From Dimorphilus gyrociliatus (lineage: Eukaryota; Animalia; Annelida): a stretch of 64,000 bases of DNA. The position numbers were made by a program, and so were the translations under genes. The stretch is taken from positions 1,850,946-1,914,945 of the forward strand of contig CAJFCJ010000006.1 of NCBI GenBank assembly GCA_904063045.1, given 5' to 3'. Under the pieces are notes generated by a model. That model saw only the letters and a program-made list of their open reading frames with translations, was not told the origin of the DNA and did no database searches. Below are positions 3,001-36,387 of this stretch, one piece after another; the first letter of the stretch is position 1, and each line of letters begins with the position of its first letter.

Positions 3001-6000
3001 TCAGCTGGATTTATACCTGTAACACCACCAACTCCTGTAAGTGAAATCGATGATGGTACGGTTGCTCTACCAGTTCCCTTAATAAAAACTTTCAGTGAAT
3101 TTTTACCAATATTTGCATAAGGTAGAGAGCATTTAATATTGGGTCCAGAGTAGGTTGGATCTGAGCACTTTACATCTCCAACTAATATTTCAAGTAAATC
3201 AGCATCAGAACCTAAATTATTTCCAACTATTTCAATCTCTGTTTCACTAGAGATAGTCAAAGGAGTAACGGATGTTACTGCCGGTGTTGATGAGTCTTTG
3301 TATTGATAGTCACAATCAGTACAGGAGAGAGATTTTCCGTTCAATTTAATATCAACAGTTACAGTTTTCTCTGACAGACTTGGTTCTGTCACACAGACAA
3401 TTGTGGAGAAGGTATGCTTCAGCGGTGAACAGTTGTCAGTTCCAATTTTAACTTTCAAGTTATCTTTAACAAAGCCTCCTCCATTTATAGTTACTTCAGT
3501 ACCTCCTATTAATGACCCCATGGTGGGACTAATGGAATCAATATTGGGAATTAGCTTGAAATACCGAGAAGAGTCTTTGACAACCCGATTTGTAGCGAAA
3601 CCGTTTCCTTTCACAACTACTTGAACTTCATGTAGTATTTCAGTTTTTATTGGTACGGCAGGATCGATTTTAAAAACAATTTGGGTTGAGGATGAACTGA
3701 CAATTATTGCTTTTTGACCACCAATTAAAACTTCCACGCATTCTTTATTTGCAGAAAAGCCAGTACCTGTTATTGTAATTTCGCTGCTCAGACTTCCTTC
3801 ATTTGGAGAGACTTCTGTGACAGTCGATGATAAGCAGGACCAAAAACCTACTTGAAGACCTGCTGTTGCTGGTTTAGCAGCAGTACAGCCAGGAACTTGA
3901 ACTGGTGAACATGTTGTAGATCTCTTTTTCCTTAGAGATCCACTAGCTATTTGGGGCTTCACGCCGTTAACTGAAACTTCCAAATCTCTCAACAAAGATT
4001 CTTGTTCCTTTTTTACAATTAATTTTCCTTGTAGTTTTATAGATTTTGATTCATCTATGTAGCCAGATGAATAGGTAAATTCTCCAACAGTACTTGTTGC
4101 GAGTTTGAACGATCCTTTTTCAGATCTCGGACCACTATAGGCAAATCCATCAGTTTTTGGTGTCAAAGACTTGATGGAATCTGTCTCGTAAACGGTAAAT
4201 TTTAGTTTTTCACTTGGAGATTCCCAGTTCCATATAACGTTATCTCCCAATTCAACTTCGGTTGTCTTCTTTTCCCAAGCATAGCCCTTTCCTAAACTTT
4301 CAATTGAACCTTTATTCGAAATATAGGTGGTTTTTCCAGCCCAACCCATCTCACACAATATTTCTGTGTCAGTAACAGATATAGGTTTACAAATAACATT
4401 TCCTGCTCTAATCTTAATAGCATTAACTTCAGTTCCAAAGCCATTTCCTGTTAAGGTTAGCGTAGCTCCTCCAAAAAGAGACATTTCCTTCGGGGATAAC
4501 CCACTTATTTCCAGTACAGCTTTCACTTTCATCACATTTCCCGATGAATCAGTTGCAACACCATAACTTGGAATATGTACATTAACATCGTGTTCGCCAG
4601 CTGCTAATTTAGGAGTTGTAATTATAATTTTATCATTTTCCCAACTTTCTACAAGGGCAGGTCGGTCCCCAATTGTCACTTTAGTCTTAGGATAATCTAA
4701 CTCTCCAAAACCAGTACCAGTGATTACAATTTCTTCGCCGCCAAATACGGTTACTTCTGTTTTATCAATTGCAGCAATTGATACAGATCCAACAGCAGAA
4801 TAAGTAAAATCGGATGGAGCTGTGTAGTCATTACTATCTTTTGTTGCTTTTACAACTGCTGTTGTACTTCCACCCTGTATATTTATATGTTTTAACATCA
4901 AAACAATAACAGAACTCGATTGTACTATAAAAAGTATCATCAATACTTACACTTGGAGGCACAATACATACAATCTTGTTAATTTCCAAGTTAATGATTC
5001 GGCATTTATTACTTCCAATTGTAATTGTGATTCCCTTAGAAAATCCAGCACCATTAATTGTCAATTTACTGTTACCTCCCGCGTTAGATGATGTTGGGTC
5101 AAAGCTAGTTATAACTGGTGTGTAAGTGAAAGTTCCCAAATCAAATTTTGCTCGACCCTTTCCTTCAACGTAGAAACTCATTTCTAAATCTCCACTGACC
5201 TCGGCGCCTAATGTACATTTTATTTCGGTTGCAGTAGCAGATGAGACAGTACAGTCACTATCTCCAACAGAAAATTTGTTCTTAGCTATAGTAGTTGAGT
5301 CAAAACCTGTTCCGGTCAATGTTATTTGTGTTCCAACAGATCCAGTCTTGGGTTGAATATCAGTTATCGTAGGAACAAGGTCAGATTTGTATTGAAAACT
5401 GCAATCTCCTAAACATCTTACAGGTATATTATTTATCTCGACAGCAATTTGAGGTTTTACATGAAAAGTTGAAACCATATCACCAGGGACAGGTGCATAT
5501 AGCATGGCACCATTTTCTAACGATACAATGGAGACATCAGCCCCGTTTCCTGATATTCCTGATTTATCTGCTATTGTAATATCAGGAACGTCACCTGGTT
5601 TAGTTAAAAAGCGAATTTTCCATTTTCTATCATAACAGCCACCATATCTTTTAACTGATACAGAGCCAAATTCATCGAATTCTTCGAATGCATCCTTAAC
5701 TTCGTCATCTTCCATGTTTATATTAAGATTAATGGTTTTGCCTTCTAAACTTACATCGTAGGCTCCTCGGACTCCTCTAGAAATAGCTTGATCTTGAGTT
5801 ACGCTAAAATCCGATGACTGATAAACAAGATAAATAATATTCAATAGTTTGTTAAAAATCTCTCAGAGAAAGTTTCTTAATACTTACTTGAACGTTGTAA
5901 ACTTCTAATTTGTCCAAACCGGAAACGCAGTCCCAAGTAAGAAAAGATATTTTGTAAATTCCATTTGAAGTTTTTTCAACTTTTAGATCTTTTGCTCTTA

Positions 6001-9000
6001 AATCTGGAACTTTTCTGACATCGGCCACATTTGGTAAACGATTAATGATATTATCTGAGCCAATATATAAAGCATCAACAAAATTGTCTTTAGTTCCAGT
6101 GATAGATCTCCATAAATACACATCATAAAGCATTATTCTTACAATTTCGGTTGATTTTCTATCAATTTCAATTTGTTTTTGCATATCAAAACATTCATAA
6201 TGCCACCTAACGATGAAAAATGTAATATAATAATAAATTAGCTTTTATTATAGACGCCTTACTTTCTGTTATTATGATTAGGGGTTTTCAAAACTAGATA
6301 TGAGGCTGTCATATTGGACAGAGTTTTCATTCCAAATGAGTAATACTTGTATCTGATTCTGATAGAGTCGTGAAATTGGCCTCTATAAGCTAAGCATAGC
6401 TTTAAAATTGGAAGAAAAATGTATGTAATGGCTATTATTCTCAATGATTTTCCAACTTACATATCTGTTGTCCTTTAAATTAATTGGTTTCGTCGTTTGA
6501 AATAGTGCTCCAGGATTTTTCAAAGAGGTTTTTCCACAGAAAGGTTCTTCATCCGAGTCCAATGTACCTTTGTATTTTCCACCATCCTCGTAGTCAAGCG
6601 CAACAGCGTGTTGATAAATTGGGTTTACCATGGAACCATGACATCGGATACCGAATAATTCCGAAAGACTTTTATGTATCTCGACGGGATTATTGGTGGT
6701 TGGTCCCGAAAGAGATTGCGAATATTTTAAAGCAAATTTGGAATATGATGGAGTTCCAGTTTGACTTCTAGTTACAGTACCAGATGAACCAGAGAATTCA
6801 GGTGGAATTTCAATCTTAATTAACTCTCGTTCCCCGATATTATCTAAGAATTTTACTTCGAATTCAATTTGAGAACCCTTTTCTTTTCTTTTTACAGAAA
6901 CTTTTCCCGGTCGGATTGTAGGTAGACCGTTAAGAACTTCGGTCATTTGCTGATAATCGATAGAAATGGGAAGTATCGGTGTTTTTATTTCATTGAAGGT
7001 CAAAGTGAATTTAGTATCAGGATTGGTAGATGTAATTTTAATTTTTTGAACTTCGTTCTTTCCATTTTTCGCTTTTGGTAAATTTGTGATATCTAAAGTC
7101 TAAGAAAATTGTATATTTGTTTGAAAAGTTCTTTAATAAATTGGATTAAAATGTATATATTACTTGAATTTCAGGTAGAGTATCTGTTTTACTTTCAATT
7201 TGCTGTACATCATCAACTGCAACTCCAGTTTGAGCAGAGTTTAAGTCAGACTTAAATTGGAAAACTCCCAGAAGAGATCCTTTACCTGAATGAATCCATT
7301 CAAGTAAATAAGTGTTTCCAGCTATTAAAGTTTTAATTTCGGAAATTTGTGTTGCTTCCGATTTGAAATTTTCTGAATGTTTCGTAGCCTCAGCAATTTT
7401 TGTTAAAGAAGAAACTTCTCCATTTTCACTATAGGAATAATTAACAACAGTGAACGTAAAGTTACTTAAATTCTCTACTATCATACCTAAAGTATAACTT
7501 GGCAACGCCCTTGCTTTTGATAGCAAATTGATAAGTTGAATTTTTTGGTGCTACATAATACATTCTTGATCTGAAGCTTTTAGGTTGATCATCTTCCGAA
7601 ACCCAATTAGTTTCGTCTAACCACTCACTTTTGTAACCAGGATCACTTGAGGTCATCGACCTGATATCGTCAATATTAGCAAAAGTCTTTGTTGTAGTCC
7701 AACTTTCGATATTAATACCACGATTTCCTATTAAGAATTATTTAATACTAACATATTAATCAATGAATTTATAATACTGACCCGAATATCCGCTTGCACT
7801 TGCAGGAGCGGCAGGTGTTAGAAGGGTAATTTCATTATCTTCCACTTTTAAAACTTTAGCCTTTTCACCTATTGAAAATATGGTTGTATTCTCTTCATTT
7901 ATAAATCATTTATTAAGAATGAAACCTCCAACAGTAACTGTTGCTTTAGAATCAGTTTCGTCAAAGAATCTTCCTTTAACTTTAACAAGACTTCCGCCTT
8001 CAGTTCCTCCTTGTGTAGGACTTACAGATTCAATTTCTATAATTAAAAATTAGACAATTAAAATTTGACCTAATTTTTTATTGTATATGAAAACTAACCA
8101 GCATACGTTTGAAATAAATATATTTTTCCTTTACGGCTCACTCTGAATAGGCTAACGTCGGTTGCCGATTTTCCAAGATCTCCATCAATTAATAGACTAC
8201 CGTTTAAATTACCAACATATGAACCTTGTAGTTTACATGCGATAGTTCCCGTTTCTTTCTCACCATCTTTACCGTCAAGTATCATTTTATAAGGTTCATT
8301 TCTGCTTGGATTCTTTAAAAGTTCGCAGTTTTGAGAACCAAAGTAATATCTGAGAATGATGTTTAGTCGATTGTTTGTAGCGTTGGCCGATAGGATGTTA
8401 CTACCGTAACGGACAGTAAAGATTTTACCCCAAATCTCAACTATTGATTTAGGTGGACCAGATTGCTTGACAATTTTTTTAATTTTTGGAGTGTTATTGT
8501 CTCTCACCTAAAGATTTAGCAATTTTAACCAAGTTCATTGACACTAGAATTTATATTATATCTCTTACGTGATGACTGCATGCATAGCTCTTAGGTTGGT
8601 TTCGGCAATAGTTTGTCAAAGGAATTTTCTTTCCGTTCATCGTTACTCGTACATGATAAGTACCTTGTAACATAGGTCTAAATAAGAGAGTAGTTGTTTA
8701 AGAAAATTTAACCCTGAGGGACAAAAGTAGTGTTTACTTAGTATAACAAACGATCTGCTCAGGGCTGCAGTCATTCTGATGTATGTCGCAATCAGCTATC
8801 GACGTTTCAGAAATAAGTTTTACTTGCAGTTTTTTACTCTCGGAACCAGGTTCCAAGCTAAAGAGATCAGCAGCAAACTCTATTTGAAAAATAAACTATA
8901 AGTATGTAATCTATTTAAAACAATGACTGATGAACAAACTTTTTCCATGAATCGTCAACTTAACGCCTCCATTAGTACCACCGTATTTAGGTTGAACAGA

Positions 9001-17491: not shown

Positions 17492-18163
17492 ATGATGGTT
17501 AGTAATAATTAACAAGATAATCTTTACAATTGATTAAAACTGTTCATAATTAAAAAAAAAAGACTTTCTATGTGAATTGATGATTTTCTTTCTCAAATGA
17601 TTATTCTATAAATTCTTATATAGTCGAAGGACACTCCTGATTTAACTGCTGAACAAATAGCTGAATTTAAGGAAGCTTTTTCCCTTTTCGATAAAGATGG
17701 GGACGGTACTATTACAACGAAAGAACTTGGAACTGTAATGAGATCACTAGGTCAAAATCCAACGGAAAGCGAGCTGAAAGATATGATAAATGAAGTGGAT
17801 ACAGATGGGAATGGTACACTAGATTTTCCAGAATTCTTAGAAATGATGGCTAGAAAAATGGGTGATAGAGATTCTGAGGAAGAGATCAGAGAAGCCTTTA
17901 AAGTATTTGATAAAGATAATAATGGGGTTATATCTGCAGCAGAATTGCGTCACGTAATGACCAATCTAGGTGAAACTTTAACCGACGAAGAGGTTGATGA
18001 AATGATAAGGGAAGCAGACGTTAACGGTGATGGTCAAATCAACTATGAAGGTTATTTTAAATTTCTCTCCCTGTATTGCCATCTATTGGCTATAGAATAA
18101 ATAATAAACTATTATTCATTTTTCATATTTACAGAATTCGTTATGATGATGATGAATAAGTAG
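17492..18163 (+). CDS. Calmodulin-like protein with four EF-hands (divergent paralog)
   Basis: An ATG-only first exon (ATGATG|gttagt) is typical of calmodulin genes. Exon 17624-18050 reads [47 protein letters not shown]...[11 protein letters not shown]. The last exon, 18135-18163, reads EFVMMMMNK*. By hand I count about 18 differences from canonical CaM over 145 aligned residues. Confidence 0.93.
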
Positions 18164-20442: not shown

Positions 20443-23400
20443 ATGATTTTAATTGCAAAGATTATAGCTATTTTTGCATTTCTCATAGGTTTGCTCGTCT
20501 AATGTGCATTACTTTTCACTTTAATTAAAGTTTATTTTCATAAATCTTAGCTTCAATCGAATGTGACGTTTATTTGTATGAAAGACCTATTAACACTGCT
20601 GTGTATACTGGTGAAAGAACACAATTAAATTGCACTATACGCAACGACACGAACTTCGATTACACGGCATGGGATTCTGTAGGATCGCATACTGGACTGA
20701 AAACAATAGCACATCAAGACTTTATTTCTCCTGAACATTTGGATCATTATGAAATTGTGGACACTTATAATCTTGTTATTAAAAGTGTCAATTCAAACAC
20801 GACAGGAAGTTATCACTGTACAGCATACGCGCATTTTGGACAATTTAATGAATATTTAGATGTTTACCTTATGTCAATGGGTAAGTTTTTCTAATTAGTT
20901 ACGATGATAAGTTTATACTTTGAAAAACAATTTAGATGAAACTAGCACCTGCGCCGATTCACAACACGAAAGTCTTGTCTTACCTGAAGGCTATAAAATG
21001 GCTTTCTGCTTTACAAATTTCGCTGGAACTTACCCTCCAATTGCTGAATTTGATGTATCCGGCGACATTATGCTACATTCAACTGTTCACAACAATGAGA
21101 TGGTTGGTGGTTGTGCAGTTGTTGCGAATGATACTGATTTCAACTGTTCGCTTATTTATCGATCACCACCAAAAGACGCCGTGTTTTATGAATTTGCTGA
21201 TAAAACTTCACCAAATCTAACGACAACTTGTCAAAGACCATCCGATAATCAACCCACAGGTGAGTCACATTAAATAACCTTAGTTTGGCAAAATGTTTTA
21301 TGTTATTTTATGCCTTTTTTTTCACTTCTAAACATTTTAGTTCCCGATTGGCTATTGAATTCTTGCAAAAACCTCTTCGAACCACCTAAACCAACAATCG
21401 TTTATAGACCAACAAATGTTGCCGTCTTAAGGGGAGAGCGAGCCACAATGAATTGCACTGGACGACATCTTGGAACCTTTCACACAATTCGATGGGATTA
21501 TAAAGCTAGTAATTCGGATTCAGCTGTTATGATTACTATTAACGATTATCAAGAGCCAAGTACAACAGCATTATTCACCATATTTGATACCTATAACCTT
21601 GACGTATCCTTTGTAAACCGTACAACATCAGGTCAATTTCAATGCGATGCCTATGATCAAGCAGTTTTAGGCACTTATAACGCCTTTTTGTTAGAAATGG
21701 GTAATTATTTACCATATCAAGACAACTTATTATTATTCAAAAATTTATGATTTAATTATACCTTGTTGAATATAAAATAAGTTGATAAATAGATAAAAAT
21801 ATAATCATATTTTATCAAAACAGAAAGCACACCCAGATGCTTTAAAAAGAATTATACAGAATTAGAATCATTGGATAGATTTTTAAGAGTTGGATTTTGT
21901 TTAAATGGGTATTCTGGAACCTACCCTCCAACAGCTACTATCACTGGTGACGATAAAGTAAAAGAAACGTTTACTTTTGGACAGGATTTCTTAGCTGGTG
22001 CTTGCGCACCTGTCTTTGTTGGTGAGAAACTCAATTGCAGTATGAAATTTGGAGCCCCACCAAGTCATTTGTGGATTTTTGATAATGTTGATAAGAGTGA
22101 ACCAGAATTAACAACTCATTGCGATGAGGAAATTACTGATGATTCGGAGATGAACGTTCCTCAATGGCTAGTTGATAAATGCGCAGAGGCATTCTTTCCT
22201 CAACCACAAGAAGTGGTTCAAAGACCTAATAATACAGCAGTTGCAACAGGAACCCAAAACGTGGTCATGAAATGCGAAACCAAAAACTTTAGAAATATGG
22301 ATTCACACGCTTGGGGTTTCGCAAAAACAGCTGTTGACTTGTTTAAGGTTGTATCGGCTTATCATGTGATTTTCCCTGAATATTATGATGTCTATGGAAT
22401 TAACGGTACTTGGGATCTTATTACTTTAACTGCTGATGAGAAGACTTCGGGAATCTATCAGTGTTATGTACACTCGCAGGAGGCATCACTGGATGAAGAG
22501 TATTACGCATTCCTTTTAACATTAGGTAAAGATTACGCGTTAAATTTATTATAAGATAGCATTAATCATGTTTAAATTTCAATTTATAGATCCAGAACCC
22601 TTCTGTACTGAAAAAATATACCCAGAGTTAGATAATGATAAGAAGATTGCTTTTTGCATGACAAATTTTACAGGAGTCTATGGACCGGTTGCTAAAATAT
22701 CTGCACCCAATGGAGAAGATTTATATTCGACAATAGTTAATGGAAGTCTAGCAGGATCGTGTGCTCTTATTGGGAAGGGTGATCACTTTACCTGTGAAGT
22801 TTCCTATAATGCTCCACCAAAGATATTAACAGACGCCGGAAATTATGATACTACAGCACCAGACTTTACAACAACTTGTTCTAGTGCCAATGGTATTGGA
22901 GATTCATCTGTAATTCCTTCGTGGTTAGAACAACAATGTGTTGAAAATTATGGTGAACCTGGCATTTCAAAAAGTCCCAAAAATACCGCTGTTTTTAGTG
23001 GAGAACCAACTACTCTGGACTGCCAGACAAAAGGATTTGGTGCGGGAGGGACGTCTACGTGGGTATATGCACCAAGAGGAAACTTAGATGACATAGCAGT
23101 AATATCTGTATTGAACTATGTAACAGATTCTTTGGAACATTTATTCGGCATCGAAGGAAAATGGAATTTGAAAGTTTCAGCTGTAAATTTCGAAACCGTT
23201 GGTTTATATGAATGTTATGCAGCAGACATTGGTTTCGAAGAATTTATGGCTGTTTATCTTATGGAAATGGGTTAGTATTACATATTTGAACCTAATCATA
23301 TAGTATAAGGATTTAAACTCTGTAGAGAGGGAGCCATCCTGTGTAGCGACTACTGATGCTGAATTTCCCAATATGAAATTGGCTTTCTGTATGACAAACT

Positions 23401-26399
23401 ACTCAGGAGCCTATCCACCGAATTTTGAAATTAGTTCGAACAATGAAAATATGTCTGGTCCCTCGTTTTCAAGGGATAAAAAAAAGGCAGGAAGTTGCGC
23501 AATGATAGAGCAATCCCAAAATTTTAATTGCAAAGTTAAATTTGGTGCTCCCCCTCCAGAACTTCTCTATGCAACGAATCACGATCTGTCAGCTCCTGAT
23601 TTGACCACTAATTGTAACGAAGGATCGTCATCTGATCAAAGTAATATTTATTCCTTATTAGGAAAATAAGATCGTCATCTGATCAAGTTTACGATTCTAA
23701 TTTATTAATTATTAATTTGACAGTTCCTCAATGGTTGTTAGATGATTGCAAAAGGAGCCTACAAGCCACTACAACACAAAAACCTGGTATACCAGTAGTT
23801 CTAGAAACACCTAAGAACACTGCAGTCAAACGAGGCGAAGACGCAAAATTAAACTGTACAGTAAGAAATTTCCCACAATTTGGTTACGTTATGTGGTCAG
23901 GATTATCTACAAACCTAAATGGACCAAAAATAATTTCGATTGGAGATCTCTTACAAGGGGATAAAGAGATATATGAACTTGAAGATACATGGAATTTGAT
24001 AATAAAAGGAACAAATGTAAATAGTACAGGGCTTTATGAATGTTATATTCTTGATACAATCAATCCTGATGAGTTTCATTATGTACATCTTGTCGAAATG
24101 GGTACGTCTAATTTTACAGACATAGTTTGTATTAGTCTCCTCGTTAATGAAATAATGTTACACTTTCAGAGGAAGAACCGCAATGTTTTGTAAAGAGTCA
24201 CTCTGCTTTGCCAAATGGCCAAAAATTTGCCATGTGTGTATCGGAATATTCTGGCCATTATGCTCCTACAGTAAACATTTCTGTTGATAATTCACTTATC
24301 TCAGGAAATACTAAGTCTTATAATGGACAAGCAGGAAGTTGTGCTGTTGTTAATACAGGAGAGTCTTTCCTTTGCGAAGCCAAGTTTGGAACTCCTCCTA
24401 TAATTATTGATGATTTGGAAATTGATACTTCTGCTCCAGAGCTAACTACTGAAAAAAGTTGCAATGCAGCTTCTGATTCGACTTCAGGTGGGTACAATTT
24501 AAGTTAATTGCTTGTCTATGTAGCAATTGTTTTTTTTTTTAGTACCATCTTGGTTATTCGACGAGTGTATCAACCAAAATATAGTGACTACACTCCCTCC
24601 TCCAGAAATGGTTGAAAGACCTACAAACCTTGCTGTTATAGAAGGAGAAAACGCCACATTAAGATGTCAAGTTCGATATTTTAGCGAATTTGGTGCTTTA
24701 CAATGGACTTATCAACGTAGCTTAGATGGCGATGTCTTCCTGTTATCAAATAATGCAGATTTCCTGCCAGGATATGAGGATTTGTTTTCTATATCTGGAA
24801 CTTATAATCTTGTTATCAAAAAGACAAATAACCAGACGGCCGGTCTGTACCTTTGCACAGCTTTTGATAGAGATATTGATGGATATTTCATGGCATTCCT
24901 TAGCTCTATAGGTTGAGACTTCAATAAAAATTATACTTTCTGATAAATATCTGTTTAATAGAGAAAGACCCAACATGTACAGTCGCCATACCGCCAGGAG
25001 TGCCACTTTCAAAGAGATTGGCAATTTGTTTCACCAGATATAATGGTGGATATGCTCCAGATGTTAATATTACGGGTGTTGGAAACAGCATCATGACAAA
25101 AACATTATCAAAAGATTTTGTCGCTGGAAGCTGTGCCTTAATAGATGATACCGCATCCTTCAGCTGCCAAGCAGGATTTGGGACTCCTCCGACCGAAGTT
25201 CTAGTTGACCCACAAATTGATACTTCAGCACCATCTTTAAGAACCAGCTGCTCTCTTTCTAGTAATCCTGCCAATGGTAAAAACTTCCTAATTATCTAAT
25301 TGTAAAATGAAATAATAATCATAATAATCATTTTACCCTCAGCACCTCAGTGGCTGATAGACGATTGTAAGGAAGAATTGACTCCAAAAGCTGAAGTAGT
25401 TGAGAGGCCATTAAATAAGGCTGTAATTAAAGGACAACCTTCAGATATGAAATGCACAGTTAAAAACTTTGGGATTGGTGACTACGTTTCTTGGAATCAC
25501 AGACTCCTTAATCTGAATACTAGAGTTGTATCAATTGACAGAAATGTTATGGATGAAGTTAAAGATTCTTACACTCTGAACATGAACAATTTATACGATT
25601 TAAATATAAAAAATGCTGATGAAACTACTGCAGGCTATTATGAGTGTTTTGCGTCTGCTGCTTCTGGTATAAGTGCAACGTTTACTGCTTTTTTCAATAC
25701 TTTAGGTAACAAAAAAATACTTCAAATTTAGCCCAAAATAATTAAGTTCTAAAATCTTTCTAGACGCATCTCCTATTTGCGCTCATGTTACTGCTACTGC
25801 ATTGCCTGCAAATAAGAGAATTGCCTTTTGCTACTCCGAATATTCGGCATTGTGGTCACCTGGTGTTAGTATGTCCATTGGCGGAGTTGGCCAGACAACG
25901 GAAGTATTCACTCAAAGTACTACAGTTGGAGGATGTATCATAATTTCTGAAGGTGATAGTTTTTCATGCGGTGTTAAATATGGAAAGCCTCCATCTGAGC
26001 TTCTACTTGAATCTTATTACGATGATTCTGCTCCTCAGTTAACCACTTCTTGCTTAGGAGGATCACCTAACCAAGGTAATCTGTTTATAGACAAAAGTGG
26101 AGATAAAAGGTTAATAGTTTATATTCTAAATTTTAGTACCTACATGGCTAAGAGATAAGTGTGTTGATAAACTTATTGATTCTTTGACGACAACTACTTC
26201 AAAACCTCCAACGGAGCCTACAACTACACCAACAAATCCTCCTACAAATCCAACAAACCCTCCAACTACACCAACGAATCCTCCAACAACTCCAACGCAA
26301 CCTTCTACAGATCAAACAACAGCGGGTAGCGCAAAAATAAATCATTCAAGCATCGTTTGGCTAGCTGGACTACTTGTTATAATCAATCTTATAAAATGA
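20443..26399 (+). CDS. Ig-superfamily surface protein A: signal peptide, 7 x (V-type Ig + six-Cys C2-like domain), Pro/Thr stalk, GPI signal
   Basis: 14 exons, all introns phase-1 GT-AG. Signal peptide MILIAKIIAIFAFLIA. Each V domain has P-x-N-x-A-V..G...L-x-C...W...Y/W-N/D-L-x-I..V....T-G-x-Y-x-C. Each partner domain has P-x-C...FC.T.Y.G.Y.P...G-x-C...F-x-C...FG.PP...D.S.P.L...C...P-x-WL-x3-C. It ends with PTNPPT repeats and AGSAKINHSSIVWLAGLLVIINLIK*, with no cytoplasmic tail. Confidence 0.88.
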
Positions 26400-27155
26400 A
26401 ATACCAGCCTTTAATACATCGTTACTCATATCTTTTTTTTATATGCAAATTAACCCAAATTTCTATATTAAAATTCCTTAAAAAAACATAACTATACATA
26501 TGCATAGAAAGTTAGAATATAAAAATTGTTCATAATTAAGAAATAGACCTTTTTCGTTCGTTATACTATATAACTAAAAGTACCGAGTAATTAAAAATGA
26601 AGTACATATTTTTGATACTTTTTTATGATAAGCAATAAAAACCAAAATTCATTACTAAATACTTGACTACTTGATTCTTTTTATCATGAATATAAATAAT
26701 TACGAATTATTTAAATAAGCTATGATTATTCATAAGATTTATGAATAATAATTAATAAAAGAATTACCTTTAAATACAGTATATCTAATACAATAGTCTC
26801 AACTATACTATAAAAATATATGAAGTGTTTTATAAACCAATCCTTATTCACTGTGATTTGCGATTTTCGTAAAAATATCCTCTTCTCTCCTCCCCTCTCT
26901 TCTACTCCCTCCCACCTCGAATCCAAGTTGATTACAGTTATAAAAACTTTAAACTTTTGAAGATATGTCATTTTCAAAATGATTTATTAATAAAAATTTA
27001 TCATCAGATTATCTTATCACTTCCATCCTATATTCCAGTATAATAATTAGGTTATAAAAAAAATTTAGTTATAAAACACATCAGTCTACGAAAGAACGAA
27101 GCAGACCAAATGATATGCTATTTGGTCAACTGGTGCAAAAAATAGTTAGTTTAAA

Positions 27156-30100
27156 ATGAAGATAATTTTAATATTTATACTTGTTTGTAAGTTTTAAGAG
27201 AAAACTCTTTCAAATTCAACATTTTTATATTTTCTATGTATTTCTTGTTCCATTTTTTGATAATTTAGCCACCTGTTCCTGTAGGGATTATTCAAAATTT
27301 CCAAAGAATACTGCAGTTTTCAATGGACAACCTGCAAGACTTAATTGCACTGCCATTGACGAAGTTAGAATCTATGATGAAACTTCGTGGATATATACAC
27401 AGAGTCAATGGCTTATTACATATAGAATAGCGTTAAATTTAACAATAAACCCATTTCAAAGTAGCAAATATGAATTTGCTGATAATTCAACATACTCCTT
27501 AAATATTCAGAGTGTTAATCAGGATACTGCAGGTGTATACGAATGTTCTGGTTCTTACGGTGGAAACAAAGTTGATAACTTTCATGCTTTTGTTCTATCT
27601 ATGGGTAAGTACACAACTATAAAAATATTACATCAAAGATCACGTGATATTAAAAGATTCTTAACCTTAGAGAGTGAACCTAGTTGCGAAGAACAAATAG
27701 AATCTTTACCAGATAATTTACCAAGCAATTTAAAGATTGTATACTGTTTTATTGAATACGCAAGCTTTTATCCTCCTAGTATTAATATTACATCTTCTGG
27801 AAAAATCTATAATGTTTTAAGTGAAACACGAGTAATTTTTGACGGAAGTTACCATACTGGAGGAGCATGCGCTTTAATAGATAGATCAGAATCTTTTAGT
27901 TGTTCTGTTAAGTTTGGTTCCCCTCCACCCGAACTTTTGCTAGATATATCATACGACGACAGTGCCCCCGATATCCAGGCTAGTTGCTCTAATTCATCTG
28001 GAAGAAATCTAACTAGTAAGTTCAATTAAATTATCAGTCACACTTGAATTTATCTGAATGCTATGAGATTTTTTACTATTAGTTAGCACGCATGATTGTC
28101 TCATTTTCACTCCTTTTTAATCGTTATCATTTTTTTTTATTAAATTTATTAAGTACCTCCATGGATACTGGATGGATGTCAAAATATCTATGAACCTCTA
28201 AAACCTCAGGTAATAAATATTCCAAAGAATACTGCAGTTACGAGAGGATCTTCGGCAAATATGACATGTACGTCAAGAAATTTCGGTTCATTCGGTTTAG
28301 TTCAATGGTTTTACAGACAAAGCGAGTCCGATCAGGCTGTTACAATTTCGGTGAACAATATAATCTATCCAAGTGCACAGGGATTAATTGAATTGTACGA
28401 TACTTATAACTTGAACGTTTTGAGCGTTGATCAAGTGACAACAGGTCTCTTCCAATGTACTGCCAGTGATGAAAATTTTTATGCTGTTCACGAGGCGTTT
28501 CTCTTAGAGATGGGTATATTGTTGTTGTTATTACTTTTTCATTTGTCTGATAACTATAGATTATTATCACATAGAAAAAAGTTCAATATGTATCACGAAG
28601 AGATATGCGGAACTGGATGACTTAGTTACTCCAAGAAAAGCAGCATTTTGCCTAACAAATTACACTGGATCTTATCACCCTACCGCTAGTATTATGGCAA
28701 ATGGTAATCTTAAAGAAACGTTTACGTTTGAAGTAAACAACACTGTAGGAGCTTGTGCTGCTATCCTAATTAGTGAAAGAATTAATTGCAGTATGAAATT
28801 CGGAACACCTCCTGATAATCTTATCCTTTTTGAAATTACTGATAACTCGGCTCCAGATCTTGTTACTTATTGTGATGAAGAAATTGTAGATACTGAAGAG
28901 GACAATCTCTTTCCAAAATGGCTTGAGGAGAAGTGTGCGGAAGCTCTATTTCCGAAACCACAAGAACTTTTAAGAAAACCTGAAAATGTAGCTGTTGCGA
29001 GGGGATCTACAAACGTTACCATGCATTGTTCAACTGCAAACTTTCGCAACTATGATTATAACAGTTGGAGATTTTCTGCTGAGCCTGGAGGAACACAAGA
29101 TATTATCACAGGAGTCGATTTTGTTCTTATTGGTTTTGAACATTTATACGGAATTGAGGGAACGTGGGATTTAGTGGTGAAGGAGGTCAATGATAAAACA
29201 ACAGGAATTTACGAGTGTGAAGTTAGAGCTGATGCCGAAAGTGGAAATATTGAGGGTAATTTTATGGCATTTTTACTTGAAATGGGTGAGCTTTAATTGA
29301 AATAATTTAGTAAAAATTTAATATTTTTAAACTATCTTAAATTAGAATCTGAACCGCTGTGCGCCGAAGATCCGTATGATGGAGTTGTTCCTGATTATTT
29401 AAAAGTTGTCTTCTGCCTGACTAATTACACAGGAGCATATGCTCCTCAAGTTTCAATAACAGCGGAAAATGGTATTGAGATTTCGGCAAAGGTATTAAAT
29501 GGTAGTCAAGTTGGTTCTTGTGCCGTAATCAAGAAAGAAGATGAATATAACTGCACTGTAAAGTTTGGTACTCCTCCGACAGATTTAACTTTATTTGGAG
29601 ATTTTGACACTTCCGCTCCTAATTATACAACAAGCTGTTCTAGTAAAAATTCTATAAACATAGCAAATAAAATACCAAGGTGGTTAGAAGAGCAGTGTAT
29701 AAATAATTATGGAGAACCAAGGGTTATTAAACGCCCCGTTAATACTGCTGCGTTTACTGGAGAAAAAGCCCAACTTGATTGCACTACAAAATCATTTAAT
29801 CAATACGGTGGTGTTTTTTGGTCAATAAAACCTGAAAATGGCAATATCATTCCGTTATCCTTTCAAGATATTATATCCCCTAACTATCCAGATCAGTACA
29901 GCATTCAAGATAAATGGAATCTTATTATTAACAGTGTTAATAAGGAAACGACCGGCTTATATGAATGCTACGCCAGCGATTTAGGCGTTGATGTTTTCTA
30001 TGATGTTCATTTGCTGGAAATGGGTAATTTTTATTTTAATACGTGCAAAACAGTCATTGATATTGTTAACTCTTTACAGCTAAAACACCATCTTGCCTAG

Positions 30101-32250
30101 AGATCCCTTACAATGATGCTCCTGGAATGAAATTAGCATTCTGTATGACTAATTACTCGGGTGCCTATTTTCCTAACTTCAATCTAACATTTTCGGGAGA
30201 TGTACAATCCGGAAAAGTTTTTGTAAAAGATGGTCAAGCAGGAACGTGTGCGGTTATTAAAGAAACGATGGCTTTTGATTGTACTGTCAAATTTGGAAGT
30301 CCACCTTTCACTCCTGGCAATGAGAATTTAGATTATTCAGCTCCTAATTTAACGGCACACTGCTCTGGAGGGTCTTCGCCTCAACAAAGTAAGAAAATAT
30401 CAATCTTTTCTTTATGTCTATTATAAAAATTATAACGTTATTAAAATGCAGTACCGCCCTGGCTTATGGACGATTGTTTATCAAATCAACAAATGACCAC
30501 TCCCGAACCAAAGCCTCCACAAATTATAAGACTAGCAACAAATACAGCAGTATTAAGGAACCAGTTTGTAACTTTACCCTGTACAACTAGAAATTTTCCA
30601 AGTAATGGATTTGTCATATGGAGCTTTATATCGCCGGTTTTTGACGGTTTAGGTATTATTTCGATCAAAGATGAAATTATGACTAACGTACCAAAGGATA
30701 GATATGCAATAAATGATACATGGAGTTTAGATATATCAAAGGTAAACGTGAACACTACGGGATTGTATGACTACTATATTATGGACGGAGTTGATAAAAA
30801 CATCTATAAATATATCTTCCTTAGCGAACTTGGTTTGTAAATATAATCATAAATATACATTATCATTTATTTCTTACAATTTCATATAGAAGAAAAGCCT
30901 AAATGCATTACTTCGTCTCACGATAATCTTCCAACTACAAAACAATTTGTTTATTGCACTTCCGACTACTCAGGCTTCTATCCTCCAGGCGCAAACATAA
31001 CTGTAGATGGCGATATTGTTTCATTTGTCTCGTCTCAAAAGAATGGAAAAGTAGGAAGTTGTGGAATAATTGATAAAGGAAAACCTTTTCTTTGTCAAGT
31101 TAAATTTGACTCACCTCCAGTAATACATCCGAACTTTCCAATTGACATGACAGCCCCTAGTTTAACTACCGAATGTTCTGAGAATTCTGGATCAATAGGC
31201 GACGGTAAAGAGGATTACTTACCATTCGTTAAATCGTCAAAAAACAATTTAGAAGATATTAAATAACTGCTTCCCTTTTTAGTGCCCCAATGGCTTCAAG
31301 ATTTGTGTATTAAAGGTATAGAGGAAACTACACCTATCCCGACTACTCTTAGTCCCGACTTTCAAATTCTAACGAAACCTAAAAATATCGCTACTTTGAC
31401 TAATGACTCAGTTCAATTATCTTGTGGCGTCAAAGGTTATGGCGCAAATTGGGAATTTAGAGATATGAGTTCGTCTACAAAAACTATCTCTGTTAATAGT
31501 GACGTTGTCCAAAATATGAAAGACAGATACCAGATTGTGGAAACTTACAATTTAAGGATTCTACAAGGCAATTCCAATACTGCTGGTCTCTATAAATGTT
31601 TGATAACAAAGGACGGAAGTATCTTAGAAACTAATGGAGCTTTTGTCAGTACACTTGGTAATTTCAGCAATAATTATCTAAATGAGTGGAATCTATATTT
31701 ACGATTTCCCAACAGATAGACCTAAATGTGTAACTTCGACATCTGCCAATTTAGCTCTACCATCGGGACAAAAAATGGCATTTTGTTTCACAACATTCTC
31801 TGCAAAATGGACTCCAACTCTATCTATGATGATATTAGATTCGCAATCAACTTCCACATATTTTAACATTGTAGGAAATATGGCAGGTAAATGTGCACTA
31901 ATATCGAAATTAGGAAGCTTTACATGTGAAGGAGAGTTTGATGCACCTCCCGCTAATATTATTGAACAAGGTGTAGACAACTCGAAGCCAACCTTTTCGT
32001 TGTCATGCTATACTGCAACAGTTAATGGTAAGCTATTTATTATAGGAAAGCGTCAATGTTTTAATATGCACTATTTATTTACTAAAATGTTACAGTACCA
32101 GAATGGCTAATGAACGAATGCAAAGAGAAATATGGCGGGCAAACAACAACCTCTATATCCTCCACCCCGGGTAATGACTGCGGAAGTATCAACCATTCAG
32201 GCATTATTTGGTTAATTGGGTTACTTTTCACAATCAATATGATAAAATGA
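27156..32250 (+). CDS. Ig-superfamily surface protein B: signal peptide, 6 x (V + six-Cys C2-like), GPI signal
   Basis: 12 exons, all phase 1. It starts MKIILIFILV|STCSCRDYSKFPKNTAVF and its units are collinear with gene A. It ends ...NDCGSINHSGIIWLIGLLFTINMIK*, nearly the same tail as gene A. Exons at about 29345-30023 and 30890-31204 are open but absent from the ORF track because they lack an in-frame start codon. Confidence 0.88.
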
Positions 32251-32599
32251 CGCATCAAGCTTTAACATACTTTTAGTCATTTTTTTTTGTACAACTATAA
32301 AATTTTATTAGGATTAATAAACTTCCAATGATGAAAGCTCAAAGATCACTGGCAGTTTATTCTGTCTATTGTATCTAGGAGCTTCAGATTTATCTGTCGA
32401 CAATAAACAAGTGTATTTTTTATGTTTAAGTATTATATTATCAAAAAACTTTATCATTTTCGTAATGAATTTACCATATATGATTTGCATAATAAAAATT
32501 ATAAATATAAGTTTCTTTTTGGCCGAGTGTCATTTATTTTACTCTATTCCATACTTAAAGTTGTTTATGAACTTCTTATTGCTTAGAAATTTTTTAGAA

Positions 32600-34594
32600 A
32601 TGACTCTGTCAAGGATTGCTGTAGTGTTAATTATTATTGGTATTCTTATTATTTTGTCGACTAATGATGACAGTTTAGTAATTTTATTACTTTTCACCTC
32701 TCCATAGCTACAGTTGACTGTAGAGATTATATGAAATTTCCAAAGAATACTGCAGTTTTTTTTGGAGAACCCGCAAAACTTAACTGCTCTGCTGTAGACG
32801 AAGTGAGAGTATATGATCTAACTTCGTGGATTTACACAAAGAGTCAAACATTGTATACTTATGCAATAGCGAAAAATTTAACAGTGGACCCATTTCATAA
32901 AGGCAATTTTGAATTTGCTGATAATACAACATATTCATTGGCTATTAAAAGTGTTAACAAAGATACGTCAGGTGTATATGAATGCTCTGGGTCTTATGAG
33001 GGAAACAAAGTTGATAATTTTCATGCTTTTGTCTCTTCTATGGGTAAGACAAATTTTAATAAGGGAAATAAATAGGAGAATAGAAATATAAGACTGTTTT
33101 ATAATTGATGTATGATTTTTGTGTTATCGATGTTTTATTGATTTCAGACAGTAAACCTGGCTGTAACGAGCAAAGAGACTCTCTGCCAGATTCAATTGGA
33201 AATGATAGAAAAATTGTCTATTGCTATACTGATTATGCAGGTTTTTATCCGCCCACTCTAACATTTACATCGTCCAGTCCAATTATAAATAAATATGATA
33301 CTGAATATGGAATACCTGATGGAAATTATTTCTCGACTGGATCTTGCGCAATTGTTAACAGCTCCAGCACTTTCTCTTGTACAGCTAAGTTTGGTGCTCC
33401 CCCAGTTGATTTGATTAATGACTTATCGTTTGATATAAGTTCTCCTGATCTTGAATCATCTTGCTCCAGCTCGAATCCCAGTCAGGAACCGAGTAAGTAC
33501 ATAAGAAATAGATTCTAGTCTTACTTTACTTTCCCTAATTTTAGTTCCAGCATGGCTAAAGTCGAAATGTGCGAGATCTTTAGGAAGAGATTATAATCAT
33601 AGACCAAGGAATCAGGTGGTTGCCCCTGAGTCATCAGCTGTGCTCAATTGTTCAGACGTTAATTCAGGAAAGCATGACAAAGGAACCTGGAAGGCAATAC
33701 AGAGTGATGGAGGATCGGGCTTTGACTTGGCAGTTAACTTTGAGATAAAAGAAAGTTTAAAAAAATTTTTCGAATTTCCTATTGAGGACGTTTTCAACCT
33801 AAAAATTAAAGCTATAGATAAATATTTAACTGGTTATTATCTCTTTGAATATTCCCTTTTATATTGTAAACCGCTTTTCCTAATTCTCCTTAGGCTATTA
33901 TGAATGCACTGGTCTTAAGGACGATACCATTATGGAACAATACAGCGCCTTTGTTCTTTCAATTGGTAATCATTTAATCTTCCATTCTTTTGTCATTTAT
34001 TGATCTATTAATACCATATTTTGGTACAGATAAGCCTACTTGTCAGCTTAATTCTCATGATGCTTTGCCTGAAGGCCAAAAATTGGGCTTTTGTCATACC
34101 ACGTTTGCAGGTGATTGGTTACCATATGCTCATATGGTGATCAATGACGTAATAGCTCCATCTCCACTATTCGATAGACCTAGCCCACCATTGAATCCAG
34201 ATTGGGCGATGGTAGGCAGTTGCTTGATAATAAGCAACTCTGATAGTTTCAATTGTAAGGTTGGTTTTGATAGACCACCCGATCACGTCTTAGAAGACTC
34301 TAAGAACGTAGATCTTACTGCTCCAGATTTCGAAGAAACATGCACTCTTGAAAATTCACAAGGTATAATAATTTGGAACAACAGAAAGAATAATGTTTAC
34401 TATTTATTTTGTTTTATATCACAGCTCCTGCATGGCTAGTAAATGACTGCGAAAATTTTCTAAACTTTCCACAGCAAACGCAAGCGCAAACGCAGACTCA
34501 AACTCAAACGCAAAAAACGACACAAAGCAACAATTCCAATAGAAACTACCCTAAGTTTATCATTCTTGTTTTTCTTCTAATACTGATTGATTAA
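32600..34594 (+). CDS. Ig-superfamily surface protein C: signal peptide, 2 x (V + six-Cys C2-like), Gln/Thr stalk, GPI signal
   Basis: Seven exons, all phase 1. It starts MTLSRIAVVLIII|ATVDCRDYMKFPKNTAVF. The second V domain is split by an extra 61-nt intron (33833-33893). It ends QTQAQTQTQTQTQKTTQSNNSNRNYPKFIILVFLLILID*. Confidence 0.85.
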
Positions 34595-35322: not shown

Positions 35323-36387
35323 ATGGAGGATACTAATGGAACTCAATCAAAAGATGTTCTGGATATATTCCACAATGTTAAATTACTTGCAGTATTCAGT
35401 ATACTAAATTCAGTTTCTGTTGCATGTTTAATATTCTCAGCATTTACAATATATTTTGTTGGCTCTCACAAAAGTTTACCTGGAAAATGCCTTATAAATT
35501 TAACCCTTTCTTTGGCTTTGGCAAAATTAGCTTTTCAAGTGAATCCTAACTTCTCCCATAAGCCAAATGTTTGTTCTTCAGCCGCTGCCGCTCAGCATTA
35601 CGTTTGTCTTGTTGCATTTCTTTGGAAAAGGTAAACAAGAACTGATATATGTACTTAATGAAACCTAATTAGCATAACGAATTTTTATAGTATTCTTTCG
35701 CACGATCTCTCTACAAGAGTTAAACTTCACGCAGATCATCATTTGTCCAATGATGTTAAAGAATATACTATAGATCAAAAGAAGATCCTACGCTTCAGTC
35801 TATGCATAGCTTTTGCTTGGGGATTGCCAATTGCCATAGTTCTGTCATGCGTTGTTATAGAAGTATTTATAAAATCCTCTTTTCATTATGGAAATCCTGC
35901 ATATTGCGGTGTTTTTGGCGATAACATGCTTGTTTGGTCTTTGGCATTGCCTTTGGTCTGCATATCTATTTATACTTTGATCGGATTTCTGAGATCATCT
36001 TTCATCATTGCGAATAAATTTCAAAGAAAGAATAACTTTCAAATGTTGAGTGCAAAGTATCATTTAAGTAATAAGCTAATTACAAACGGAAATGATACTG
36101 TCGCTAGATGGCAATTAGGATTTTATTCAAAAATTACCATGGTTATGCTATTATCGTGGTTATCTGGATTTATTGCTGCATTTACTAATAACTTACCAGC
36201 ATGGATTTTCTTTGTTGTGCTGAATAGCAGTCAAGGTTTATTCTTTGGCTATTCCCTTATTATATCCACCCATTATTGGAAAGATCTAATATCTCGTATT
36301 CCGGTATTTAATAAATGTTGTTATAGAAATTCGGCCGATCAAACAGAAGTAGCCATTATCATGAAGTCAATGGACCCTCAACCATAG
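35323..36387 (+). CDS. Secretin/adhesion/Methuselah-type (family B) 7TM receptor with a very short N-terminus
   Basis: Two exons (35323-35630 and 35691-36387, phase-2 intron). Family-B-like motifs: SLPGKCLINLTLSLALA (TM2), CSSAAAAQHYVCLVAFLW (TM3), AWGLP (TM4), YGNPAYC (ECL2), VMLLSWLSGF (TM6), FFVVLNSSQGLFF (TM7). Confidence 0.85.

Follow-up and report, generated by a model that had tools for sequence, protein, structure and literature searches.

A stretch of 64,000 nucleotides of the Dimorphilus gyrociliatus genome (hereafter, the window) carries three co-oriented plus-strand genes, A, B and C, which encode a lineage-restricted and apparently undescribed family of GPI-type proteins of the immunoglobulin superfamily (IgSF). 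Their products, of 1691, 1435 and 527 aa, contain 7, 6 and 2 repeats, respectively, of a V-type Ig domain followed by a constant-type Ig domain (V-C unit), and the gene models bear out this arrangement as it was proposed in the initial annotation. We give about an even chance to the reading that these are extracellular, multi-site IgSF adhesion or surface-coat molecules, GPI-tethered, N-glycosylated, disulfide-braced and restricted to dinophilid annelids. The main features of the locus are the following (window positions).

Gene A, 20443-26399, plus strand: 14 exons, 1691 aa, with signal peptide, seven V-C units, Thr/Pro stalk and GPI-type tail; ortholog on L041.
Exons of gene A, plus strand: 20443-20488, 20551-20880, 20936-21259, 21341-21700, 21824-22525, 22590-23270, 23326-23640, 23724-24101, 24170-24487, 24543-24911, 24962-25276, 25343-25705, 25764-26075, 26137-26399.
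Signal-peptide exon of gene A, 20443-20488, plus strand: 15 hydrophobic codons and a phase-1 donor; the joint is present in the X2 transcript.
Fused exon pair of gene A, 21824-23270, plus strand: constant module 2, helix and V domain 3, then constant module 3, helix and V domain 4; the constant module runs into the next V domain without an intron.
Last exon of gene A, 26137-26399, plus strand: helix with the sixth cysteine of unit 7, Thr/Pro stalk of about 49 aa, small-residue omega region and hydrophobic tail (putative GPI addition).
Gene B, 27156-32250, plus strand: 12 exons, 1435 aa, six units; model from genomic sequence; ortholog on L039.
Exons of gene B, plus strand: 27156-27186, 27269-27604, 27671-28015, 28154-28513, 28575-29285, 29346-30023, 30080-30388, 30452-30832, 30890-31204, 31283-31657, 31716-32027, 32096-32250.
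Gene B exon taken for structure prediction, 29346-30023, plus strand: constant-type Ig module (about residues 1-100), helix (111-121) and V domain.
V domain of unit B5, 30452-30832, plus strand: F-strand cysteine absent in both species.
Gene C, 32600-34594, plus strand: 7 exons, 527 aa, two units; model from genomic sequence; ortholog on L039 directly after B.
Exons of gene C, plus strand: 32600-32639, 32708-33043, 33148-33492, 33545-33832, 33894-33965, 34030-34362, 34425-34594.
Extra intron of gene C, 33833-33893, plus strand: 61 nt, within the V domain of the second unit, just before the F strand; identical site in the second species.

All introns of the three genes are GT-AG introns of phase 1, 50-138 nt long, and the models are free of internal stops. 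A 4953-nt contig of the public run X2 skips 13 of the 13 predicted introns of gene A, which shows that the gene is one spliced transcript, and one of the splice joints was also seen in an RNA run of an unrelated coral sample. Expression of the cluster, on which the initial annotation had made its proposal depend, is thus documented for gene A. The end of exon 7 (23622-23641) is repeated in the following intron (23670-23688), and the transcript takes the first donor. The second species is a Dimorphilus-like worm represented by genomic DNA in Logan assemblies SRR23372216-232 (L039, L041, L043-L045), with conserved synteny, useful for comparisons with the present genome. The fused-exon state of gene A is found in gene B and in this species as well. 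An assembly artefact or a recent repeat was rejected, since the units are 24-59% identical and the transcript spans the array; a single long gene was rejected, since stops, tails and signal exons separate the genes in both species; and a pseudogene was rejected, since the genes are intact in both species and dN/dS is low.

Units were delimited at a recurring Pro-x-Trp-Leu helix motif, which gave 7, 6 and 2 units of about 220-234 aa. The high divergence among units that had been described at first sight was confirmed, with a median unit-to-unit identity of 30%. The accompanying statement that every cysteine and motif position is kept was too strong: only 14 columns are invariant in the alignment of the 30 units of the two species, and in B5 the F-strand Cys of the V domain is replaced by Tyr in both of them. 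The B-strand Cys and C-strand Trp columns of the V domain are conserved in 30 of the 30 units and the F-strand Cys in 28. In every gene the first exon is short and hydrophobic, and the encoded protein ends in a hydrophobic stretch with no cytoplasmic tail. Inspection and hydropathy revealed in all six genes of the two species a signal peptide and a C-terminal hydrophobic signal placed after small residues, with no transmembrane helix or cytoplasmic tail. The tails have 12-17 hydrophobic residues and a mean hydropathy of 1.95-2.3 over the last 15 residues, and from them we infer that the products of A, B and C are GPI anchored. The separate signal exon and GPI-type tail attributed to each gene were therefore recovered, while the Thr-rich stalk said to occur in all three is long in A only (about 49 aa, vs about 13 aa in B and about 18 aa, rich in Gln/Thr, in C). 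The A and B products carry 23 N-glycosylation sequons each.

The first domain of the unit matched the Pfam families V-set, I-set and ig with E values of 3e-8 to 1e-5, some above the curated cut-off, and has the B-strand Cys, C-strand Trp and F-strand Cys of V/I-type Ig domains. The constant module matched no Pfam Ig family, C1-set and C2-set included, in any of its 15 copies. Its profile had no match among PDB sequences (best E = 1), the ESM Atlas feature search and the phage collection returned nothing, and the ESM Atlas shape search returned generic Ig proteins only. AlphaFold2 models (pLDDT of 91 and 88, the latter for the constant module) have seven strands followed by a helix. The best fold match of the constant module was PD-L2 (Z of 8.1, rmsd of 2.1, 79 residues aligned), other top matches were the TCR constant domain, PD-L1, IgE and B7-H3, and all the top rows were C1/C2-type domains; a Z of 8 is middling, and the added helix lies outside the fold matches. 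For this partner domain, the models thus predict a constant Ig fold of the B7-like type that carries an extra helix. The C-strand Trp is missing from the domain, and the last of its six cysteines is encoded by the next exon where the intron remains. In the first unit of the paralog on contig C23, the A- and G-strand cysteines were lost together (genomic DNA of both species), which supports an A-G bond and leaves the E strand with the helix. The three probable disulfides of the module would then be the canonical B-F bond, A-G and E strand-helix.

We searched the D. gyrociliatus genome (77.9 Mb, 349 contigs), whose assembly has been described as having roughly 350 scaffolds (PMC7854359), and found paralogs on four other contigs: C1 (2 units), C12 (3 units), C23 (2 units) and C30 (about four young copies). 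These paralogs carry public DgyrCDS annotations. The C30 copies (G000:C30:387000-398300; L031, L032) are two-unit members, 90-98% alike in DNA, and the second-species contig L044 has one copy of this type. Neighboring C30 copies seem to have been merged into one gene in the public model DgyrCDS14159 (P0151, 1510 aa). The models DgyrCDS9127, DgyrCDS13079 and DgyrCDS846 (L034, L035, L036) begin within the first V domain without a signal peptide and therefore look 5' truncated. Two V-only genome matches, on C18 and C7 (L037, L038), were not retained as members, since the constant module is absent.

Database queries were single exons, exon alignments or protein identifiers rather than joined gene models. 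The profile search covered 1.84 billion representatives and listed matches of at least 56 bits, so that weaker relatives may be missed. Among the best 150 matches, the constant module was confined to D. gyrociliatus and the second species (Logan assemblies). No characterized bilaterian ortholog was found in the profile and word-index homolog searches, in line with the initial proposal of a lineage-specific and probably undescribed family, which one-to-one orthology to a characterized bilaterian family would have contradicted; literature searches likewise found no description of this Ig family. The mollusc V-C2-GPI protein P0150 and Capitella P0104 were rejected as relatives, their constant-module alignments being unconvincing (probability of 28% and 0.6%, respectively), and the word-index searches brought nothing new for the family or for P0150. 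The locus adds an apparently undescribed IgSF family and a variant of the constant-type Ig domain that Pfam misses, kept and expanded in a genome that is among the most compact of animals. Lineage-specific Ig expansions are common among invertebrates, so the surprise is moderate.

In the second species, the ortholog of A is on L041 and those of B and then C on L039, with 7, 6 and 2 units kept. Introns lie at identical positions, and both fused exons and the additional intron in the second unit of C are shared. The identity between species is 54% for A, 60% for B and 56% for C. The dN is 0.30-0.38 and dN/dS about 0.14-0.17, rough values since dS (about 2-2.6) is saturated. The conservation of the array unit for unit at low dN/dS shows that it is old, fixed and under purifying selection, neither homogenized nor hypervariable. 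V and constant domains diverged equally between species (57% vs 56%, Wilcoxon test; P = 0.52). At the C12 locus, an extracellular neighbor has exons mostly 60-74% identical and a conserved gene 80-96%, so the family, at 54-60%, evolves fast without being extreme. The thin allelic data point to little variation within species: over about 780 bases, an independent sample departed from gene A at seven positions, four of them synonymous and three replacing, and samples of the second species differed at 0-2 positions, corresponding to an allelic variation of about 1% or less in very few samples. The likeness to rapidly diversifying recognition arrays drawn in the initial annotation is not sustained by these results, given the one-to-one fixed units, the purifying selection, V domains that are not more divergent and the low variation.

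The history of the units was analyzed with a quick maximum-likelihood tree without a firm root. Units were paired by position: A2/B2, A3/B3, A4/B4 and A5/B5 (support of 99-100) and A7/B6 (94), while A6 stood alone and B1 grouped with C1. Gene B accordingly has a C1-like first unit, and its remaining units match A2-A5 and A7. A two-unit ancestor may have spread to several contigs; at this locus, growth by unit duplication would have been followed by a whole-gene duplication giving A and B, B would have acquired its C1-type first unit, and unit order and number would then have frozen, an order of duplications that is tentative, as the tree has no firm root. Concerted evolution was rejected, since the tree groups units by position. 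The V exons of B1 and C1 (27269-27604 and 32708-33043; 74% protein identity, dS of about 0.64) are closer to each other than to their orthologs, while their constant exons are not closer to each other than to the second-species orthologs. The pattern points to gene conversion confined to the N-terminal V exon. The array is a clear example of a repeat protein in which divergence of the units was followed by a freeze, not by homogenization.

The V-C pair has precedents in vertebrates. In the B7 family (PD-L1, PD-L2, CD80 and 4Ig B7-H3) and the butyrophilins, a V domain is also followed by a constant-type domain, the membrane-proximal domains of these proteins were the best fold matches, and in B7-H3 the pair has been doubled by exon duplication (PMC3172298). 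However, these vertebrate proteins are transmembrane, have one or two pairs, share 8-19% identity over the fold and do not show the extra helix or disulfides; no orthology is implied. In the SLAM/CD2 family, CD48 is a GPI-linked V-C2 protein and Ly9/CD229 has two tandem pairs (PMC11012012). This family resembles ours in the V-C2 pair and in the two disulfides of its C2 domain, whereas it is a vertebrate family, its V domain lacks the disulfide kept here, it has at most two pairs and no sequence match to it was seen. The architecture is thus shared with B7 and SLAM proteins, whereas no sequence kinship to their vertebrate members emerged from the PDB and Pfam searches. The initial annotation had set the repeating V-C2 pair apart from the Dpr/DIP, IgLON, CEACAM and Hydractinia Alr families; the pair is nevertheless no new design, being present twice in Ly9 and in 4Ig B7-H3 and, in GPI-linked form, in CD48. 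The copy number and the modified constant domain are what is unusual. The novelty lies in the six to seven copies, the narrow range and the three-disulfide constant module with its helix; a V-C pair, single or doubled, was already known.

In the adhesion or coat reading, each unit would consist of a V-type Ig domain and then a constant-type Ig domain that has no Trp and is braced by three probable disulfides; the helix, whose coding sequence opens the next exon, would make the junction with the following unit stiffer. The products could then engage units of their own kind or of paralogs on opposing membranes or matrix, or build a coat that resists proteases, and with 2, 6 and 7 units they would do so at graded heights. 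Lacking a cytoplasmic tail, the A, B and C proteins cannot signal alone. We infer the adhesive or coat function from the missing signaling tail, the many sequons and disulfides and the fixed units under purifying selection; the faster evolution of the three genes relative to neighboring genes is a point against it. By analogy, the proteins would work most like GPI-linked IgSF adhesion molecules, but they do not belong to the Wirins, the Alr proteins or the FREPs. Wirins (IgLON, Dpr, DIP) are GPI-anchored IgSF adhesion proteins that occur in paralog sets, and the IgLONs among them have homophilic and heterophilic adhesion (PMC10084454). A neural or developmental cell-identity code of the Dpr/DIP or IgLON kind would agree with GPI-type IgSF paralogs on five contigs and with their stable orthology. 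Yet a Wirin has two or three Ig domains, and its orthologs occur throughout the bilaterians (PMC10084454), vs 4-14 domains in alternating pairs here, with the constant module, which has no sequence kinship to theirs, in two related worms only among the best 150 matches; as there were also only about seven ancestral genes, we regard such a code as improbable. Secreted or shed structural components of mucus, cuticle or egg cocoon, in which the tail would be a non-working GPI signal, would fit the shortness of the tails, and many disulfides and sequons would suit a harsh exterior. The small-residue region, spacer and hydrophobic end are nevertheless kept in the six genes of the two species and in the paralogs, and we attach little probability to this explanation. 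A polymorphic allorecognition or mate-recognition locus like Alr of Hydractinia is very unlikely. Alr genes are also clustered, divergent invertebrate IgSF genes whose products have six extra invariant cysteines, and conservation is among the lowest in the first unit of A (44%). Alr proteins, however, have 1-3 Ig domains without the B-F disulfide, an Fn3-like domain, a transmembrane helix, a cytoplasmic tail and high polymorphism (PMC9546547). The V domains here retain the B-F cysteines, the proteins have no Fn3-like spacer, transmembrane helix or tail, and the few differences between samples argue against a polymorphic locus.

The main rival to adhesion or coat, which we consider rather unlikely, is that of innate-immune or symbiont-sorting surface receptors, whose V-C pairs would bind microbes or glycans on the epidermis or gut with a fixed specificity per unit. 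It draws on four unnamed secreted proteins of FREP-like design from environmental transcript-like contigs: related V-C pairs, two or three per protein, are joined to fibrinogen in P0064, P0100 and P0158 and to SRCR in P0159 (P0064, P0100 and P0159 correspond to L047, L048 and L050). Alignments of their constant domains with this module cover 81-96 columns (probability of 87-92%, pairwise E of about 1e-6), and the single match of their profile in the D. gyrociliatus genome is a V exon of this family. They share with our units the tandem V-C pairs, a junction with a leading Pro-x-Cys, a long proline-containing F-G loop and a Cys-x-x-x-Tyr-x-Gly-x-x-Pro motif after strand B. They differ from our units in retaining the C-strand Trp, in having no cysteines in the E strand, G strand or helix, and in being secreted proteins that carry an effector domain. 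In annelids, FREPs and SRCR proteins have been linked to immunity (PMC5117596). The presence of fibrinogen or SRCR in the nearest of the distant relatives found points to immune binding and against adhesion or coat, and the young, nearly identical copies on C30 would also fit. On the other hand, the HMM scores of the fibrinogen/SRCR V-C family on these units overlap those of generic controls, so the kinship is only suggestive, a lead; no effector or lectin domain is present here, the models ending in stalk and hydrophobic tail instead of the C-terminal fibrinogen domain of FREPs; one-to-one conservation is strong, and the V domains show no excess divergence. A more speculative and unlikely reading is that the V-C pair is an older, hitherto unrecognized annelid recognition module, coupled to fibrinogen or SRCR effectors in some animals, which in Dimorphilus would have gained two cysteine pairs and a helix acting as a clamp to become a GPI-tethered rod, each fixed unit having its own specificity, i.e., a germline "multi-specific" one-chain receptor.

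By inspection, the neighbors of the cluster in the window are an IPT/TIG-repeat, fibrocystin-like large gene (4834-8507, minus strand), a calmodulin gene (17738-18100, plus strand) and a seven-transmembrane receptor-like gene (35323-36387, plus strand).
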